Shown here: piece after piece, positions 49,401 to 63,348 of the stretch | How positions within the stretch are numbered: position 1 is the stretch's first letter | How the letters are laid out: every line of letters starts with the position of its first letter | NCBI GenBank assembly: GCA_977016875.1 | Contig: CDRNST010000143.1 | Location: 434,001 to 498,000 of the forward strand | DNA from: Pavona decussata | Taxonomy: Eukaryota | DNA: 64,000 nt | Direction of reading: 5' to 3' | The notes under the pieces: generated by a model | Databases searched by the model: none | What the model was told of the DNA's origin: nothing | The model's input: the letters and a program-made list of their open reading frames with translations, nothing else | Translations under genes and position numbers: made by a program

Positions 49401-52400
49401 GCATAAGGGCTATTTCATTAGTGCGTGTTGCAAAACAAAATAAAAACAAAAGTAATCATTTTAACCCATTACAACAAAGGTAAGAACAACATAATCCGAA
49501 TCTTAGGGACTGCAAACGATTGCAAGTCATTTCAAAATGATTGGCCTGGTCGAGAAATAATTGCGTTTCTTTAGAAGGTGACAGAGCTTAGTAACGTTAA
49601 CCCAAAGGAAACGCGAAACGGCCTCCTATACTCGACTGAAAACCGCTCTAAATAAAGCCGAAATTGTAAAATTTCTACCATAAATAGTGCATCTGTGGTT
49701 TTTGTGACCCTTTCTAAACGCATACTGTTTTCAAAGTGTGTTGTTTTGAATTGGAAAAAAGGCTGTAATAGGTGGCTCCACCTTGACCCAGCAGTGCAAA
49801 TCGGAAAGATAAAACTTACTTATACGTTTCCAAAAGGGGAAAGGTGCGTACAGTATAGTAAACACCCGCATAAAGGAACAAGTGGATTAAGGACTTCCAA
49901 GCTGAAATTCGTCATTTTAGACACCTCTTATATAAGAACCTTGAAATAAATATATGAAGACTTATTCAGGCTGACCGTGAAAAAAATAGATTCTTAAATG
50001 TGGGTGTTTACTGAATTTGTTATAAATCAGTACTGCCTAAATTCCATTGCTTACTTACTTCTATTCGCCCAATGACAAATAGCCAGAATTACATTGTTGC
50101 AAAAGACCTATTGATACTACAGTTTCATACCTAATTTAATACCAATGAATAATTTGCCTTTATTAGGTTAAGTTGGACGTTTTCGGAAGAAGAGGATAAT
50201 CATTGCGACGCAGAGGTGTCAGGTAAGTTAATAAGAAAGATGCTCCTAACGCAACAGTATTTGAACCAAGTAACGTCAACTTTGATAACTTTGATTACGC
50301 GTACGACGTTGTCCAATTCAGGATTGCTGAGTTAAAAGGGAGAGGATATGAATCCTGAGGTGACCCAAAAGGCCCTCTGTTAGACCAGGAGCCCATTACC
50401 CGGAGAACAAACTCCTATAGACTCGTGTAACGGACCTATTTATCAGCTGGCAGCCCCCCCCCCCCCCCCCCCCTCACCCCATTCGACTAGCGAAGGCCCG
50501 TTTACAGCGCTGCTCTCTGAAAATCCTTTCGCTGCACGAGCGAACCCACTTTCTACGCAGGCTAAAGAGTAACCTGCGATGGACCAGGAAGTCCAGCATC
50601 TCACTGAGGGGCATCATGTCCGCTGAACGGATGGGGATTTATTTACCCGTGTTATGGAAATAGAAGTCGATAAATAACAGCAGTTAATGTAAAACACAAG
50701 CCCTCTACTTTCAATACAGAAACTAATGTGACAGTTTTGGACTTGGCTTCTTGGCCATCAGCAGAGGAACTGGAATTAGATGATTCACAATTCAAAGCCT
50801 TGCAATTGGCGTTGACCAAAGAGTTCGCAATCATTCAAGGACCACCGGGCACTGGAAAGACCTACATTGGACTAAAGGTATTTAACAAAAACTACGACCA
50901 ATACTAAGATTCAGTTCAGTTTAAGCACCTCAGTTTCTCAAGATATTTTTCAATCATTTTAAAAACTCAAACATATGATATGGTAAACGGCAACGTAACT
51001 GCAATCTTTAAACCTAAACTCTCAAAGTCAACCTAAAATTAGCTACTTTTGAGGAAGAAGTCTCAGTTGAAATATTTTCTTACCATAATAAAAATAATGA
51101 AAATAAAAATAGATGCAGACATCAAAAAAGGTTTTCGAAAAAGACATTTTTTCAAAGGAAGGAATTATCTTTATGATAAACCAGATGTCTTCGTGTAGTG
51201 TACAATCACGATCTAATTGTTAAATCAAACAAAAGAAATGTGTAGATTTCCAAAGGGGTGAAGTGTGGAGAAACGAATCGGAAAGTACTGAGTTTCGTGA
51301 TGGTAATGGTGATGTCTTTATATACAGCACATATTACATAGTCTCCTGGCTCCATCAGTTCTTGCATTGATCTCAAACACTCACCAAACCCACACTTGAT
51401 TGGAAAGACAGATGAAATCGGATATTACATTACAACGTTTTCTTCCTTATCCACCAACACAGATTGCCAAGATTCTACTACATAACCAAAACGCTTGGTC
51501 AGCAAACGGAAAGAGTGGTCCTATCCTCGTAGTTTGTTACACTAACCACGCCCTCGACCAGTTTCTGGAAGGAATCCTTGAAGATCATCCAGAGGGAATT
51601 ATTCGAGTCGGAGGAAGAAGCCAGAGCGAGAAAATACAAGAACTCAGCCTTTCTAAATTGAAAAAGGTGACTAAAAGCTCAACAGAATCTTTAAAATGGC
51701 ATGCCAGTAACAGCTATTTTAAATCGGTATAGTTGGTAATAATTAAACGCAGATTGACGGACGAAAATCGGTCCGGAATAATAAATAATCTTTAGTAGCG
51801 CTATAGATTTTTTTGAATCAGGCCGATTTTCACCTCAGGCTAAATCAATAGGTAGGAGGCAGTAGGAGGCAGAGGGTCGAGTGGTTAGGGCGCCGGACTT
51901 GAAATCCGGTGGTCCCGGGTTTAAGTCCCGCTCTGAGCGCTAACTGGAGTTGTTTCTCGGTAGCCCCAAGTTCAACTCCTCGGACGCGCTTGTAAATAGC
52001 CAGCTGGCCTGCCTCCTGCCAGTTTGGATTTCTAACCCATGTTACTTTCAATTTGCATTATTTCTTTATGAAGTTTTATGCTCGGCCCCACTAGCACTTG
52101 TGCTATAAACACTGCCGAGGGTAAATAAAGGTTATGTATGTATGTATCAAAGCAACGGTGAACGAAATCAACCGACGTGTCAATTAAAATTTATATGGGC
52201 TAATTTAAGGACTGGACCTACCATAACGGGGCTAGAAATCGGTACGTGTAAATAATTAGCCTTAAGACTACCACCTTGAGATTCTTTCACAGTTCTTTTC
52301 CAATTATTAATTCAAGGATTTTCGCTTTTTCTACAATTCGAAATAACAACAAACGCAGCCCGCATTGTGCATTAACTGTTCCGAAGAACCCATGGATAAT

Positions 52401-55400: not shown

Positions 55401-58400
55401 CTCCGATGTTACTCCTAATGGTGCTGAGAGACGAGACCTCAGCGGCGGCTTTCAGTTCCAGAATGCTCACCGAATTAGACAAAAGATCAAACAAATCATT
55501 CGGAGAGAGCTCAAGAACGATGAGATGATGAGCAAGGACGAAGCTACCCAGGTAATTATATGAATGTACGATAACATTAAAAGTTGTAATCATACGCTGG
55601 AAAAAGTGCCTTAGCTTGTGGTAAATTATACCCTAAAAATAACTGCAGTTTTGTTTTCTTTAACTTTTGTTTCTTTTCATTTCAAAATTCATTCAGTCAA
55701 ACAATGACGACCAGAAGACCAAAAAAGGCAAGGAAGCACCGGCTTAGCAAATTTTGTCTGAATGGCCACACTTTATAGTAGGATTTCCCCCCTCTCCCCT
55801 CCCGAATAGAAATGCTTATGTGTTTTACAATGCTTAAATATGAGTTGCGATAAAGTCTGAAAAGAGTCTATTCTTCCAAAATCACCGATACGTAACTCCC
55901 GTTTAAGTAGCGCAAAGTGAATAGGAGCATGACCACTTCACTGCTATTTATTGGACAATTGTTAAAAACTCTATGGTGATCGTTATTTCAGGTTGAGGAC
56001 GTGTGGGAAGTTCATGACACAGCGGATCGCTGGCGCCTGTACCGCAGATGGGTGTATGATGCTCGTGAGAGCTGTTACCAAACTATCTTTCAGTTGCAAG
56101 AAATGTTTGATGACAAGGCAGATGAGCTTCAAGAACTAAGAAATAGGGAAGATTACGAGATCCTTAAAGACGCAGATGTAGTTGGGATGACCACTACAGG
56201 TAGAAGCAATGTTAAACCAGCTCAGCGTTAGAGTTACTAGCCCCAAAGTGCCGTGCTAACCTCTTTCAATCTAGTTACTTTATCGCCTGATACCCAAGTT
56301 GTGGAATCATCTGCCAGCCTCCCTCTGCTCTCCCTCCTATATCAACAAATTTATATCTCATTTAATTAAACTATGCCAATGCCCTAACTAACCCTTTTAA
56401 CAATTAACATGTGTCCTAAATACGGTGCTTCGTCCGCACAACATTTTAACTCCAAACATTTCCTGTTTTTGATTACGTTACTATAACGATTTGTAGGAAA
56501 ACTGTGTTTTGTTTTGTTTTGTTTTTTTATAGTCAGTAGTAATCACAAGTACTTAATAATCAATACAACCAGTATAGTGAGAATGTATCCTCTATTCTTC
56601 CTAGATTCTTCATAAGCCACGTGGATTAAATTTTCCATTAAATTATTGCTTTTAGGTGCTGCGAGGCATCGAAGTCTGTTGCAAGAGTTGCAACCAGTGA
56701 TTACTATTGTGGAGGAAGCCGCTGAAGTGTTTGAGGCACACACGGTTACCTCTTTAACTTCAGGATGCCAACACTTAATTCTGATCGGTGATCATCAACA
56801 ACTCCGTCCCAATCCCACAGTCTACGATCTCCAGAAAAATTACGCTTTGGACGTGTCGCTGTTCGAGAGAATGGTGACCAATGGACTACAATTTGAAAGG
56901 TTGTGCTTACAGCACCGAATGCGACCAGAAATCGCCAAGACGTTGGATCACATATATGTCAACCCAAGACTGCAAAATCACGATAAGGTGCTGAAGTTTG
57001 AAAAGGTTAAAGGCGTGGAACGAAATTTGTTTTTTGTGGACCATAGCAAGAAAGAGGTAATGACGTTTAACTTAACCATGCATCGCATTTACTGAGTTGA
57101 GTTGAGTTGAGTTGAGTTTAATTTTCAATTGTATTATATATATTTCCCTTGTCTAAACGCGTCTGTTACGAACACCTTGAAGTCCAAGTTTAATTTTGCC
57201 TAAACTCCCAAACGTGCAAATATTTCTTGAAACATTGTCACTAATTTGCAGTCAAACTGATTTAGCTAGATCGGCACTAATCACAAAAGAGTAAAATGTC
57301 CCCAGTAAAATCACCAAAGTTACCTACGGTGTAAAAGCCAGCCTACAATTTAGATTTACCTTTGTAGGACAGTGTCAAAGAAGGGAAAAGTAAAGCCAAT
57401 CTTCATGAAGCTAAATTCCTGACAGCCCTATGTCGCTACTTCATTCAGCAAGGTCAGTACAAGCAAGAACAGATTACAGTTCTAGCAGCGTATAGTGGAC
57501 AACTTGTCAACCTGAGGCGAGAGATGTCAAAAGACATGGAGTTTTTTGAGGGCGTGCGTGTCACTGCGATAGACAATTTTCAAGGAGAAGAAAATGAAAT
57601 CATCCTTCTATCGCTTGTTCGCAGCAAGAGGATTGGCTTTCTCAAGATCGCAAACAGAGTCTGCGTTGCGTTATCGCGAGCTCGAAAAGGCTTTTACATT
57701 ATCGGAAATGCCACGCTTTTGTCTGAACAGGACCCTGAGCTCTGGGGGAAAATCATCACAGATATGCGCGAACAAGGAAATCTGGGAACCCACTTAAAAC
57801 TTGTGTGTCAGAATCATCCCCAAAACTTCATTGAAGCATCGAGTGCAGATGATTTCGAGAACGCCCCAGAGGGAGGATGCAGTGAGCAATGCCAGTTCGG
57901 TATGCCTGACTGTGAACACATTTGTCAATCATTCTGTCATCCCATCGATATCGAACACAAAGAGGAATTCGCTTGCCAGATGCCATGCACTAGAAGGTGC
58001 GATAACGGTCATCAATGTCCCAAGATCTGTAGCGAAGACTGTGGCCCCTGTATGGTGAAAGTACCGAAGATCATTCCCGAATGTAAACACGAACAGGAGG
58101 TCCCTTGTTCTATGGATCCCTCTGAATTCAAGTGCAAGCAGATAGTAAAGAAAAAAGCTTTGCCTTGTGGTCATGTGAATAATGCCGAGTGTTCAATGGC
58201 TGCTGATGAAATCAAATGCAAGAAACCCTGTGGTTTGTTAGAGTGTGGCCACCCTTGTCAAGGTAAGAGTTAAAGACCACGACCCGGATGTTGCATAGCC
58301 GATTAACGGTAATCTATGATTAAAAGTTAACCGAGATTTTCAGCTTACTTGTTAAAATTTTTTTAAAATCTAATTTGAAGCTAATAATAAACAAAGGTCA

Positions 58401-61400
58401 AAATCAAACCTGATGGACATAAATCTTTTGAAAAATCTTTATTGTTTAGTAGTTAAACTCGAATCGTTAATCCAGGATTAGCTTAATCGGGCTTTGAACA
58501 ACTCGTCCCAGATAATAACGACATTAACCAGAGTTTATAGAGCAATAAGGATGGAGAAAGAGTGCGTGAAAGTTGGGAATTAGTCGGGGCTTAAGCTCCT
58601 GTTAACCCTCGATTAATTCAATTAATCTCGTTCTCAGTTGTTTATCCGGGCATTATTGTTGAATTGTTGAGTTCGGTTTATTTGTATACACTGTTTAATC
58701 GCGCTTGACGTCAAGAAATTGAGAAAAGGGCGCTGACTCTGCATTACTCCGTTGATTATATATAACTCTGGTGCAATGGTGTATTGGTTAGCGTGTCGGA
58801 CTTCCCGGTAGAAAGACGGAAGGAAACGGGTGCGTGGTTGGAGGCTGGTTCACTTCCGCATCAATTGCCTCCCGGGACAACATACCTTACTCAGCACAGT
58901 CCCCCTCCACCCACTTCAATAACTAGGTATCAGCAAACCCTTATTGAGGCTTAGCAAAATGTTGTCATGGGTAACCCTCCAATGGACTAGCATCCTATCC
59001 AGGGGGATCGAGTAGTAATGCTACTAATCGCCTCATGCTGCCTGAAATGCTAGTTTTACGCACCGATTTCGATGAATAACTATGTTGTTGAGTTAGAACG
59101 GACCAATATCCTTTGGGGTTATGCTAAACATAACTTAAAAGGTTTTTTTTTTCTGATTAACAGGCAATTGCAACCTTTGTCATCAAGGGCGTCTTCATCT
59201 GCCCTGTAATTTTCAGTGCAACCGCACTCTGTTTTGTGGTCACACTTGTAAAGACAAATGTGTCCGCCCTTGTCCGCCTTGTTCAGAAATGTGTGGGATC
59301 TGCAAACAGAACTGCGGAATTCCTTGGAATCGCCCACATCAGAAACGCCCAGAGTTTTCCTCAGAGCAATACAAGAGACAAAGGTGCGACAATCCTTGTC
59401 AAGAACAGCTTGGGCATTCTTGCATTGGAATTTTCGGAGAAGTTGGCCCTAATCTGTGTCGAGTTTGCAACGAAGACGCTGTTGAGTTCAGCGAGAGTGA
59501 GCGAGAAGCTAGGTTTGTAGAACTGGTGGACTGTCGTCATGTGTTTGAAGTGAAGACATTGGATCAGTGGATAGATGAATCTGCCGTTGAGGAAGGTGAA
59601 AATGAAATAAAACGGAGACAGTGCCCCGAGTGCAATACCCCAATTTTGCACATACACAGATACCAGGAAATCCTTTCCGATTTTAACGCTGTTAAACGTC
59701 GAATCCTCCTTTCCAACGTTGTAAGTCATGAGCAGGTAAAGAGAATTCTAGAGGAATTGAAAACATTTAGGGCAGAAGAAATGAAGGTACACGTTCAAAA
59801 CATAGAGCGATCTATCAACAGCAGTAGTTTGACCTCTCAACAAGTAAGCAAGTGTCAAAACCAAGTTACTTTTCTCAAATTCCTTGACCATCTGATCACA
59901 AAGTACAATCTCACAAGTGAAATGAATCAGAAGCTTTTTTGCAGTATAAATTTTCTTACAAAACGGATAATGGAAAGACGCCTTTGCTTTAGTGAACAAG
60001 AAGTCAAGGAATTTATGGACGAGCTTTCAAGAACAAAGCTCCTCGTCTGCTTGGAATGTTTAACGATTGCGCTAGAAGGCAAGGCCCTAACTCTCAAAAC
60101 AGAAGATGACAGGATTGTGAACTCTATAAGAAGAACTTTGGCGTCAGGAAAAGTAGTTGGTAAGTGCACTTTTAAGTTCTCAAAGAAACGTTTTGAAGTA
60201 AATCCTGGAGTCTTGGAGTCTGTTGCGGAGTTTGATTTTGGAGTGTTTTTGTCTGTTTTGAGTTCCCTGGCACATCTTGACATTATAACACACAAGTCAA
60301 GGGTAAAATTAAACGACATAATAACTTTATACTCAGTCCATTTTAATTTTAGCGTTTTATTAGGTTAACTTTTTTTTTCTTTGTTTTTCGTCTCGAAAAA
60401 AGAATGTTTATTTACTTTACAGCCACTTTTAAACGGTCTTAAACAGTATATGGATGAATCGTTTAGTGAATTATGATGTAATTTGTCATACAGTCGTTTT
60501 CAAGCAGTTTCATATAACAAAATTAAAATCTTTTAAAATGCATTTACCTCTTTTAGGTCAGCAGAAGATGGAAATGTTTATGGCTGATATCAACAGAATT
60601 AAGAGGCGGTACGGGTTCGTCAAGGAAGTGGAGCCGACTGACTCCAAGTCAGAGCTGAAACACATTGTCATGACAAAACACCTCGCTCAAGGACCCTGGT
60701 ACAAATGCAGCAAAGGTACTTCAAATCATGAAGCTTCAAACTAAAAGTTAAGCTAATGTGACAAGGCTCAGCGTTGAAGTGTATCTCTCTCATCTCCCAA
60801 GGCGTGATTTTAATTTGACTAAGAGCTCTACCTCTTTATACTACTAAACCGTCTATCAATAAGTCGTAGTCAAACTTTTTTTTAATAAGAATATGACAGT
60901 GACATGTTTCTAGATCTTCAGTGTTGTAGCAATAGCTTTCTCGAAAGGGTTAAATGACTAATTTGACCGTAGTTGTTCAAAAAGTGGATAACCAATTAAC
61001 AGTTATTTCGCAATGCCAAATCTCGTCATGAGGTCATTTCAGAGACAACCAACTCGAATGCACAAACTGAAATCACTCAAGGGAAATGTTCGCTTCTTAT
61101 GGCTTTCCGAATCTTTCACGCAGCTTTTGTTTGTCGCTGTTTTCTTTATAGACAAAAATCTACTCCAATGCAAAAAAAAGTATAGTACCAACCTCATTGC
61201 CCACCGTCTAATACTTGAATGAAATGAAAGCAGGTTCGCTGTCGTGACCAGCGTGCTCAACGATTTTAATGAATACACTCACTTATATTGAGTTTATCCG
61301 ATGACTTAAAAAATATCCATTGAGAAATTCTTTTCTGTCTTTTAACTGGGGGCAGTATTAACGATAGTGCCATAGAAAAATAATGTAAACGTTTCAAAAA

Positions 61401-63348
61401 ACATGAATTAAACTGTCTAACACTCATTCATAATGACGGCATAGAACGGTAAAAATGCATCCAAAACGCTGCCAACATATAAATATAAGATGTAAAACCT
61501 GCTCTATCACCACGATTTTTCCCACGCCATGAAGAATACAGCCAATCAAAGAGTTGGAAGGGCGTGGCGTGTTCCACATTCTAGAGAACTGTGTACATGA
61601 GTTTAAAAAAAATGCATTTCAACGTCTTTTCGAAATATCTTAAGACTTTCCTCGCAAACCTTTGTTATTCTTTGCCAGTCTTCGGAGTGGTTCATGAATG
61701 GTACGAAATGTTTGATTGACCTTTCACAACATGTAAGGAAATCAATTGTTCGGGAAATCTTCGGAAAATAGGAGGGAGTCTTCGGAACTCTGAATATTTC
61801 TGAAATATGTTTGCAAACTTTAAAGGACAAACTGCTCTTGTGTACACAGGAGTCTTATGAATCACTTTTGGGAGGCTTGATCATGAGTCACTTGTGGTAC
61901 GTTTCAATGAATAAGTATATCTCTTCAAAGCATAGCAATAACGAGTATTCATTTGCTCTTACTCTCATCGGACAGGTCACGTTTACTCCGCTGTTGAACG
62001 CGTTGAAGAAGGTTCTATCAAGTGTCCAGATTGTTTCGCGGCGAAAATTAGGATTCAATGGGCAAAAGCAGAGGTCAGTCGTGATAAAAGGGATGAATGT
62101 TGACATACTAACAATGTGTTTTGAAAGTGTCTAACCAATAACACAAAGTGGGCGCCAAATCAATATAAAATTAATTCCATAGAGAACAAACAGAAACCAA
62201 CTAAATTACATTATCACAGGAACCTTAACGCGGACCGGTTTGTGAGTTGTTAAGGTATCTAAAATTGTCACAGCTTAAATGTATCGTGAATGTGAAAGTC
62301 AAGACATTTTTCATGTTCAACTTTGTCGAGGATGATTAAGTAAATAATATTCGATAAAAAACTTAAAACTTACCAATTAAAATTTGTGCACTATAAGATC
62401 AGAATATGCTGAAGAGAGAAATCTGAATGTTTTTAAAAAGATGATGCCTCCTTATCTACAGAGGTGTTATTGCACAGTTTATGGCAATGTGGTCTCAACA
62501 AGGGCTCTTCAAACCCAAAAGAGAAAATTTGGGTAACCACGCATTTTTCAAAGGTAATTAAGCAACAATAATTTAAAAAAAAAATTGACATACAATGTTT
62601 TTCAAATTGAAGCTTAATTATCTCTGAAAAATGCGAGTTTACCCCGGCCCCAATTTCCTTCTTGCATTTCAACAGTCTTTGCTAGCTAAGAACTTCATTT
62701 CCCGCATAGTCAGAAGCCGCGCAAAAAAAATACCTTTGAAATACAGTAGGTACTATCCACAAGGAATCAGAGCCGGATTCTCGGACTATCCCAAGACTGA
62801 GAGAACTTATGTTCAGTAGCAAAAGGAGGCACCATCCTTCACGCCCAGGATTAAGAATTTAAGATCATAATGATAGCAATGATTGTTGCGGAAATTTTAA
62901 TTTAAGCTTTAAAAAGCTTCGCTTTTTATCTGTAATAAGTTAATAGTACCTTCCCATGGCGCTGTTATATCTCATGGCAAGAGCGCCAAGTGTTCGATCC
63001 AATGGTTGGTGATACCGAACATGACACTGATCTCTACTTTTGTGTTATTTGGTCGCACAAGACATACTACCCAAGATTGTCTCTATTCATTTACCCAGAT
63101 GAATAAATAGCTAGATACCACGAGGGAAACCCTACCAGGAAATTCAACGGCCGTTTTTTTTAGGAAAAGTGGATGTACTAGGAAACTAATCAAACTGGTT
63201 TTGCTTTTTTATTACCTAGGTTGTGCCCACTCGTAAACGACGACCTCAAAAGGTGCACGTGACCATAGCACGCAAACCCGCATTTTGCCCAGCTGGCGCC
63301 AGGAGAGGAAGAAGGCGAAGACAATTTAGCAGGAATCTCAACCAATAA
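43440..63348 (+). CDS. ZNFX1: NFX1-type zinc finger-containing protein 1-like SF1 (UPF1-like) RNA helicase, about 3170 aa, 17 coding exons
   Basis: Phase-consistent exons: 43440(ATG; acceptor 43353)-47451, 47808-48298, 48741-48896, 49215-49345, 50167-50222, 50681-50877, 51463-51726 (alt donor 51666), 52417-52696, 53566-54234, 55181-55551, 55992-56199, 56656-57056, 57368-58262, 59164-60159, 60557-60715, 61976-62073, 63220-63348. Sum 9513 nt, divisible by 3. Motifs: [26 protein letters not shown], Walker [24 protein letters not shown], Walker [43 protein letters not shown]1-type Cys/His fingers, RZ finger. The start codon, the weak acceptor at 50680 and the last exon are less certain. Confidence 0.92.
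44550..45370 (+). repeat. Coding tandem repeat of 141/147 bp (47/49 aa) in the ZNFX1 N-terminal exon
   Basis: Units start at about 44550, 44697, 44844, 44985, 45126 and 45273 (consensus [19 protein letters not shown](CT)[28 protein letters not shown]). Degenerate copies extend over about 43600-46850. Confidence 0.95.
51852..52147 (+). mobile_element. Full-length tRNA-derived SINE in a ZNFX1 intron
   Basis: Head GAGTGGTTAGGGCGCCGGACTTGAAATCCGGTGGTCCCGGGTTTAAGTCCC, body, AATAAA and (TATG)n tail. Confidence 0.8.
53566..54234 (+). CDS. LamG-like / concanavalin A-like jelly-roll domain exon inside ZNFX1 (669 nt, phase 1-1)
   Basis: Strong polypyrimidine acceptor and an uninterrupted frame. Motifs [50 protein letters not shown] are typical of Laminin_G_3-type domains. 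Donor GTTGGT is weak. Confidence 0.85.
58770..59045 (+). mobile_element. Degenerate tRNA-derived SINE
   Basis: A-box-like TGGTGTATTGGTTAGCGTGTCGGACT and 3' block TGGACTAGCATCCTATCCAGGGGG..TCGCCTCATGCT. Confidence 0.6.
60557..62073 (+). CDS. ZNFX1: ZNFX1 C-terminal exons encoding a degenerate RZ (RNF213-ZNFX1) finger
   Basis: Exon 60557-60715 ends GPWYKCSK-G (phase 1). Exon 61976-62073 continues [19 protein letters not shown]. Read-through gives a stop at 62101-62103. Confidence 0.75.
62436..62842. mobile_element. Copy of the Kolobok-like MITE family seen at 1569
   Basis: AAGATGATGCCTCC ... GGAGGCACCATCCTT ends; interior similar to 1620-1880. Confidence 0.6.

Follow-up and report, generated by a model that had tools for sequence, protein, structure and literature searches.

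The gene described here lies on the forward strand of a stretch of 64,000 nucleotides from the coral Pavona decussata (contig CDRNST010000143.1, or C143, positions 434001 to 498000; hereafter the window, whose own numbering is used unless a contig or locus is named). Open frames and Pfam matches delimit a multi-exon member of the family of ZNFX1, an antiviral helicase and ubiquitin ligase; the gene starts about 43.4 kb into the window, and its C-terminal RZ finger, the main subject of this analysis, keeps its zinc ligands while both of its catalytic residues are gone. From the 5' end, the gene comprises a charged-repeat open frame of 1370 codons, the ZNFX1 domain (PF25396, 7e-27), a LamG exon, and exons encoding AAA_11 and AAA_12 (the latter at 2.6e-16). 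A preliminary description of this locus, made from the letters of the DNA, held that all helicase motifs are intact, and reading of the window exons upheld this: motif I (Walker A, GPPGTGKT) lies at 50839-50862, motifs II (IVEEAAEV, 56706) and III (GDHQQL, 56787) within 56706-56804, and motifs V (FQGEE, 57578) and VI (VALSRA, 57665) within 57578-57682, in the AAA_12 match. NFX1-type fingers are found at 57524-58270 and at 59164-59400.

Toward the 3' end, exon 59164-60159 (acceptor CAG/GC, donor G/GTAAGT, the slash marking the junction) encodes the final NFX1-type fingers, a putative Z-RING/Miz-like core (approximately 59457-59663) and a helical linker. Exon 60557-60715 encodes the helix that precedes the RZ finger, with an Ile at position -14 from the first ligand, and the motif GPWYKC, which provides that ligand; it ends with ...[11 protein letters not shown], followed by the donor G/GTACTT. 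The RZ-derived exon, 61976-62073 (acceptor ACAG/, donor GAG/GTCAGT), translates from 61976 on as (G)[32 protein letters not shown] and carries the His ligand, an Arg, an acidic loop, the motif CPDC (62023-62034) and a Trp; joined to the preceding exon it gives ...GPWYKCSK/G/[19 protein letters not shown].... After an intron at 62074-63219 comes a terminal coding exon, 63220-63348, which is preceded by a polypyrimidine tract and an AG acceptor, is entered in phase 0, and encodes an Arg-rich tail of 42 residues, containing [17 protein letters not shown], before a TAA stop. All exons examined in this gene are open and their splice sites intact.

This model departs from the preliminary description, which ended the gene at 62103 by translating the first 30 bases of the last intron (62074-62103) as VSRDKRDEC and a stop. 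That end is not borne out, since the donor at 62073/62074 is conserved, as GTCAGT in four of five orthologues and paralogue B taken together and as GTTAGC in locus L027, and since two spliced relatives, P0016 and P0017, run past the last Glu of the RZ exon into a basic tail homologous to 63220-63348. On these grounds the stop at 62101-62103 most likely represents intron read-through. The terminal exon itself matches the tail of P0016 (tblastn, E 3e-4) and is kept in loci L025 and L026; it does not rescue the finger, because the position of the IGGxxH motif falls inside exon 61976-62073.

The RZ residues were mapped after human ZNFX1, where zinc is bound by C1849, H1853, C1869 and C1872 and where C1860 is the nucleophile and H1881 the base (10.1101/2025.10.14.682297), together with their RNF213 equivalents, namely, ligands C4505, H4509, C4525 and C4528 and catalytic residues C4516 and H4537, where C4516S abolishes activity. 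The peptide quoted in the preliminary description matches the translations of both exons exactly, and its residue assignment, with zinc ligands present and both catalytic residues gone, proved correct. First, the four ligands are Cys at 60706-60708, His at 61978-61980 (C+4), and Cys at 62023-62025 and 62032-62034, with a loop between His and CPDC that is one residue shorter than the canonical one. Second, the position of the catalytic Cys (C+11) is occupied by Arg (61999-62001). Third, the position of the distal His, nine residues after the last Cys, is occupied by Trp (62059-62061), and IGG is absent, the corresponding segment reading KIRIQW. The finger is thus remodelled: helix and four ligands are kept, an acidic loop that includes Arg stands in place of GECGG, and IGGxxH is gone. 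A frameshift that hides IGGxxH was considered and rejected, as the other two frames past CPDC, inspected by eye, read ...KLGFNGQK... or reach a stop. In addition, the Ile at -14 coincides with the ubiquitin-contacting I1835 of the human protein, so that ubiquitin binding can be predicted for this helix.

Since the intron splits the window finger, profile and fold tests were run exon by exon and on the naturally spliced P0016 and P0017, rather than on window exons joined by us. Neither window exon, searched in this way, matches PF20173 at its gathering cut-off of 27 bits. P0016 reaches 16.4 bits, over profile positions 4-39 only, and P0017 gives no PF20173 match, against 62-88 bits for canonical RZ copies. 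An exon-for-exon control is provided by paralogue C, a canonical copy on the same contig, whose RZ exon alone scores 62 bits, whereas the equivalent window exon has no match.

Canonical copies were located by a six-frame PF20173 scan of the whole 602-Mb genome, which returned ten exons at 25 bits or more, nine of them above the 27-bit cut-off. Canonical RZ exons lie on contigs C51, C263 (three) and C143 (at 1,057,703), and partial matches on C10 and C58. The consensus put forward in the preliminary description, C-x3-H-x4-G[DE]CG-x7-C-x2-C-x3-IGG-x2-H, stands for three of the five canonical exons and fails for a GGCGE copy and for paralogue C, which reads ITECGG. The same description allowed that exon 60557-60715 might splice to another exon carrying GxCG and IGGxxH; we looked for one in and near the gene, and none exists. 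The whole-genome scan finds no canonical RZ exon in the window or downstream of the gene, the nearest on the contig being about 561 kb away, and there are no runs of N, that is, assembly gaps, in the 3' end of the gene or in the next 8 kb past the window, nearly 10 kb beyond the RZ exon. Splicing to a canonical RZ exon elsewhere was rejected on these two grounds. The exon at C143:1,057,703 belongs to paralogue C, which contains LamG and has its own upstream exon. Its RZ intron falls at the same place and in the same phase as that of the window gene (phase 1, within the Gly codon that precedes the His ligand), and this identity supports, at the level of gene structure, descent of the window finger from a canonical RZ finger.

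The partial matches of the scan (C10:128000, C10:241659, C58:1394250, C58:1475391 and C58:1581687; L006-L010) start at profile position 24 and read QCG/KCS...CPxC...[IL]GG..H/Y, with an intron that splits the finger at a different place. One of them has Tyr for the distal His, and one match opens with a TAG stop. These RZ fingers possibly belong to RNF213-like genes.

A word search with the upstream exon recovered 22 relatives, and genomic loci were taken for seven of these, one from each of seven other ENA assemblies, with both finger exons located in each. We therefore compared 11 genes: the window gene, its tandem paralogue B, the seven loci (orthologous or paralogous), and the transcript-derived P0016 and P0017. 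The latter two, from Logan assemblies representing two sequencing projects and three runs, read straight over both junctions, and P0010, the unspliced genomic counterpart of P0016, enters the intron at the same point. With upstream-exon identities of 42-93%, the set has the four zinc ligands in 11 of 11 genes, and neither a Cys at +11 nor IGGxxH in any. GPW[YF]xC, H-V-Y and C-x2-C are invariant, bar Ala for Pro in one gene, and the hydrophobic residue at -14 (I, V or L) is present in ten of the 11, as it is in every canonical copy. Where the catalytic loop once stood, the sequence is acidic and of variable length, and the segment after CxxC, variable and free of His, is the least conserved.

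The preliminary description treated the stripped finger as the property of a single paralogue, which did not hold. In an IQ-TREE phylogeny of the upstream exon alone, all 11 genes fall on one side of a branch with 97/97 support and the canonical copies outside it, which requires one change of state; within the clade, several assemblies contribute to the A-type subclade and several to the B-type. As a side observation, A and B copies share a contig in other assemblies too (P0003 with P0020, and P0004 with P0015). Paralogue B itself lies 26 kb downstream, at C143:512626-521432, about 15-23 kb beyond the end of the window, and combines a LamG exon with a Z-RING exon (50% identical, with one TAA within the match) and an RZ finger stripped in the same way. 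LamG is also present in the canonical paralogue C (C143, 1.047-1.058 Mb), and since this gene combines LamG with a canonical RZ, the implied order is LamG gain, RZ decay and A/B duplication. The phylogeny and the shared residues indicate that the stripped finger is an old, fixed state of a subfamily, which arose once in the LamG-containing ZNFX1 lineage before the A/B tandem duplication.

Ratios of non-synonymous to synonymous substitution rates (dN/dS or omega, Nei-Gojobori) point the same subfamily away from decay. For both finger exons together they are 0.17-0.31 in the deeper pairs; for the exon with the helix and WYKC alone, 0.11-0.33; and for the RZ exon alone, 0.32-0.50, on small counts. 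Exon 60557-60715 is 86-98% conserved at three orthologous loci, which share its splice sites exactly, and at the most distant orthologous locus the alignment survives only as islands around exons. By these measures the subfamily is held by purifying selection and is not wreckage.

Beyond the loss of residues, the stripped lineage has acquired a new C-terminus. The RZ exon of paralogue C is terminal and ends at a stop, whereas that of the window gene is cut by a donor and followed by an extra exon, from which we take it that the stripped lineage truncated the ancestral last exon and recruited a new one. The Arg-rich tail takes the place of the canonical RZ C-terminal tail (...EMDGA.Y.AWS...). 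Together with its counterparts at L025:10835-10960 and L026:11213-11332 it forms a conserved terminal exon with the Arg-rich motif [16 protein letters not shown]; at L027 the motif stands in another frame than the conserved acceptor. The tail could be an RNA-binding or localisation element.

What such a protein might still do depends on the second ubiquitin ligase (E3) element of ZNFX1. Full-length human ZNFX1 with C1860S or C1860A is still an E3 in vitro, through a Miz-type U-box/RING hybrid at residues 1566-1632 (Randow and Modis, 10.1101/2025.10.14.682297), and this activity is lost only once F1575A or Q1623A is added (10.1101/2025.10.14.682297). The element binds the ubiquitin-conjugating enzyme (E2) and has F1575, the linchpin Q1623 and one zinc site; the same work reports that the Ile1835 helix binds ubiquitin, and that Caenorhabditis elegans ZNFX-1, with no RZ at all, is proposed to rely on its Miz domain (10.1101/2025.10.14.682297). 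A human construct without RZ is more active than full-length C1860A (2025 preprints). Virdee and colleagues (2025 preprint) call the element Z-RING and describe it as a single E2 dock from which two routes diverge, namely, an allosteric Z-RING route, with K63 chains, aggregation and RNA entrapment, and an RZ route, with K48 chains and turnover. In their hands human C1860A is stabilised and restricts virus about half as well.

A putative counterpart of this element is found at about 59457-59663 in the window gene. The stretch follows the pattern C-x2-C ... C-x-H ... C-P-x-C with its ligands kept (alignment A1), has a Phe conserved across every family member and an Asn at the presumed linchpin position, and matches, weakly, the Pfam families RING-H2 (zf-rbx1) and MIZ (zf-Nse), with E values of 0.009-0.04. 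The core is the most constrained part of its exon when compared with paralogue B (omega 0.14); against two of three orthologues omega is 0.37-0.43, and against the third it is 1.5 on seven substitutions.

On this basis, we consider it probable that the window gene encodes a RING-only form of ZNFX1, incapable of transthiolation, in which what is left of the RZ is a zinc knuckle and a helix that binds ubiquitin. The RZ finger would no longer accept ubiquitin, precluding E2-to-E3 transthiolation, while the Z-RING/Miz-like domain would still recruit the E2 for ligation of the RING type, in one step. If human C1860A is a guide, output would be biased to the allosteric K63/aggregation route, with RZ-driven K48 self-turnover removed, and the RNA-entrapping protein would live longer. 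The Arg-rich tail would add an element for nucleic-acid binding or localisation. The steps that lead from the presence of a Z-RING to an active, K63-biased, ubiquitin-binding protein are ones that we infer from the human enzyme. It is tempting to go further and propose, though we hold this as a tentative possibility that may well be wrong, a natural separation-of-function ZNFX1 in corals: the RZ would have become a non-catalytic zinc knuckle and ubiquitin reader with an acidic loop, paired with the newly recruited Arg-rich tail, and RNA binding would drive only RING-type, K63-like output, without a self-destruct branch, giving a persistent RNA-entrapment sensor beside canonical paralogues with both routes.

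Several observations weigh against a RING-only ligase. The Z-RING assignment is made from position, ligand pattern, weak Pfam matches and conservation. An AlphaFold2 model of the stretch, from a 27-row alignment, is poor (predicted local distance difference test, pLDDT, 53.4), and Foldseek with that model against PDB returns no match at E<=0.001; its top 50 matches, all with E of 0.1 or worse, are nearly all RING or U-box proteins, which is suggestive only. Sequence searches of PDB with the 359-residue exon, P0016 and a 12-sequence profile gave no ZNFX1 match, so human F1575 and Q1623 were mapped by residue arithmetic rather than by alignment. The last NFX1-type finger (59400-59456), which adjoins the core, has lost three of its six Cys/His ligands in the window copy, through a two-codon deletion, a Cys-to-Phe and a Cys-to-Gly change; among the orthologues, P0002 has the full six and P0001 is short of one. 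This segment evolves with omega near 1 among A-type orthologues, and the whole exon 59164-60159 with 0.44-0.69 among close ones. Ubiquitin binding by the RZ remnant is itself something we infer, and the junctions of the window gene rest on homology to spliced relatives rather than on a transcript of its own. Finally, in human cells a single mutant of either E3 element has very low autoubiquitylation (10.1101/2025.10.14.682297), from which it follows that a RING-only route may be weak in vivo.

The alternative with the best claim is that the protein is fully E3-dead, as the preliminary description had it. Still competent as an ATPase and in RNA binding, it would serve as sensor, scaffold or dominant regulator and would assemble with the active copies of ZNFX1. 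The absence of both RZ catalytic residues, the feeble autoubiquitylation of the human single mutants, and the eroded, near-neutral finger beside the Z-RING all speak for it, and the canonical RZ paralogues of the same genome are possible partners. Set against this, the Z-RING ligands and the conserved Phe are kept and the core is under purifying selection; full-length human C1860A/S is active in vitro and partly antiviral, and less active than the RZ-less construct; and the nematode protein is naturally without RZ. We therefore regard complete loss of ligase function as unlikely, if worth serious attention, and the term E3-dead as overstated, given that human ZNFX1 has a second E3 element whose putative counterpart here retains its ligands and Phe within a constrained core.

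That the RZ remnant remains catalytic by another nucleophile or mechanism, for instance another Cys or direct activation of the E2~Ub conjugate, is very improbable. The domain is conserved, P0016 carries a Cys two residues before the canonical site, and the window tail has one Cys; neither Cys is conserved, however, the tail residue being Ser in orthologues and the loop being without Cys, and the segment that once carried the general-base His is the least conserved part.

Even less credit can be given to a decaying or pseudogenised duplicate with the degenerate finger as neutral wreckage. The lost catalytic residues, the three Cys missing from one NFX1 finger and the omega of 0.44-0.69 over the large C-terminal exon would fit such a case, but the examined exons have open frames and undamaged splice sites, not one of the 11 genes, across deep divergence and duplication, has lost a zinc ligand, the helix/WYKC exon has an omega of 0.11-0.33, and relatives are transcribed and spliced. 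A gene-model artefact, with a true transcript that uses a canonical RZ exon elsewhere, is hardly credible: it could appeal to junctions that rest on homology to spliced relatives, but the nearest RZ exon on the contig, about 561 kb off, is that of paralogue C with its own upstream exon, the 3' region has no assembly gaps, and homologous spliced transcripts use exactly these junctions.

Compared with human ZNFX1, the coral protein shares PF25396, the superfamily 1 (SF1) helicase motifs I-VI, the NFX1-type fingers, a RING-like core (C-x-H/C-P-x-C) with a helical linker after it, the ligand spacing of the C-terminal finger and the Ile 14 residues ahead of the first ligand. It differs in having Arg for the nucleophilic Cys, no IGGxxH and an acidic catalytic loop one residue shorter, and its additions are a terminal exon for the Arg-rich tail, LamG inserted into the helicase, and a giant N-terminus with repeats. 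It is in effect a natural counterpart of the engineered human C1860A/H1881N mutants. C. elegans ZNFX-1 is likewise a helicase of the ZNFX1 family in which no RZ ligase site is functional; the nematode protein, however, lacks the whole RZ, whereas the coral keeps the zinc-binding half and the preceding helix in conserved form, which implies a remaining non-catalytic role. With the RZ of RNF213 the finger shares a homologous zinc-knuckle scaffold, but there the ligase site is essential, and the coral finger is without both catalytic residues and below the Pfam ZnF_RZ-type threshold. Paralogue C has the LamG exon, the exon structure, and the position and phase of the intron within the RZ finger in common with the window gene, and differs in keeping ITECGG...IGGMNH.

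Paralogues commonly lose catalytic residues, and we do not propose a new kind of system, the nearest known case being the RZ-less nematode ZNFX-1. In a full-text search of the literature on the RZ finger or domain, ZNFX1 and coral, no account of an RZ finger stripped of its catalytic residues was found. The division of ZNFX1 activity between the RZ and Z-RING/Miz routes was shown only in 2025, and so far it has taken engineered or patient mutations to separate the routes. A maintained subfamily without the RZ catalytic dyad, and with scaffold, helix and Z-RING, would be a natural experiment on the purpose of each route, and bears on the question whether the RZ scaffold does something other than catalysis. 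It also illustrates how coral immune-gene families diversify by tandem duplication and domain remodelling, in this case by LamG gain, RZ decay and a new tail exon.

Two further observations concern the wider family in this genome. First, four tandem ZNFX1-like genes at C51:3318816-3383450 (L018-L021), apparently intron-poor, with open frames of 1520-2669 amino acids and no PF20173 match nearby, may be RZ-less family members. Second, six-frame matches to the LamG exon number at least 125 genome-wide, many of them in dense tandem arrays on contigs C70, C180, C318 and C78, and this large family of lectin-fold LamG exons is a plausible source of the ZNFX1 insert.

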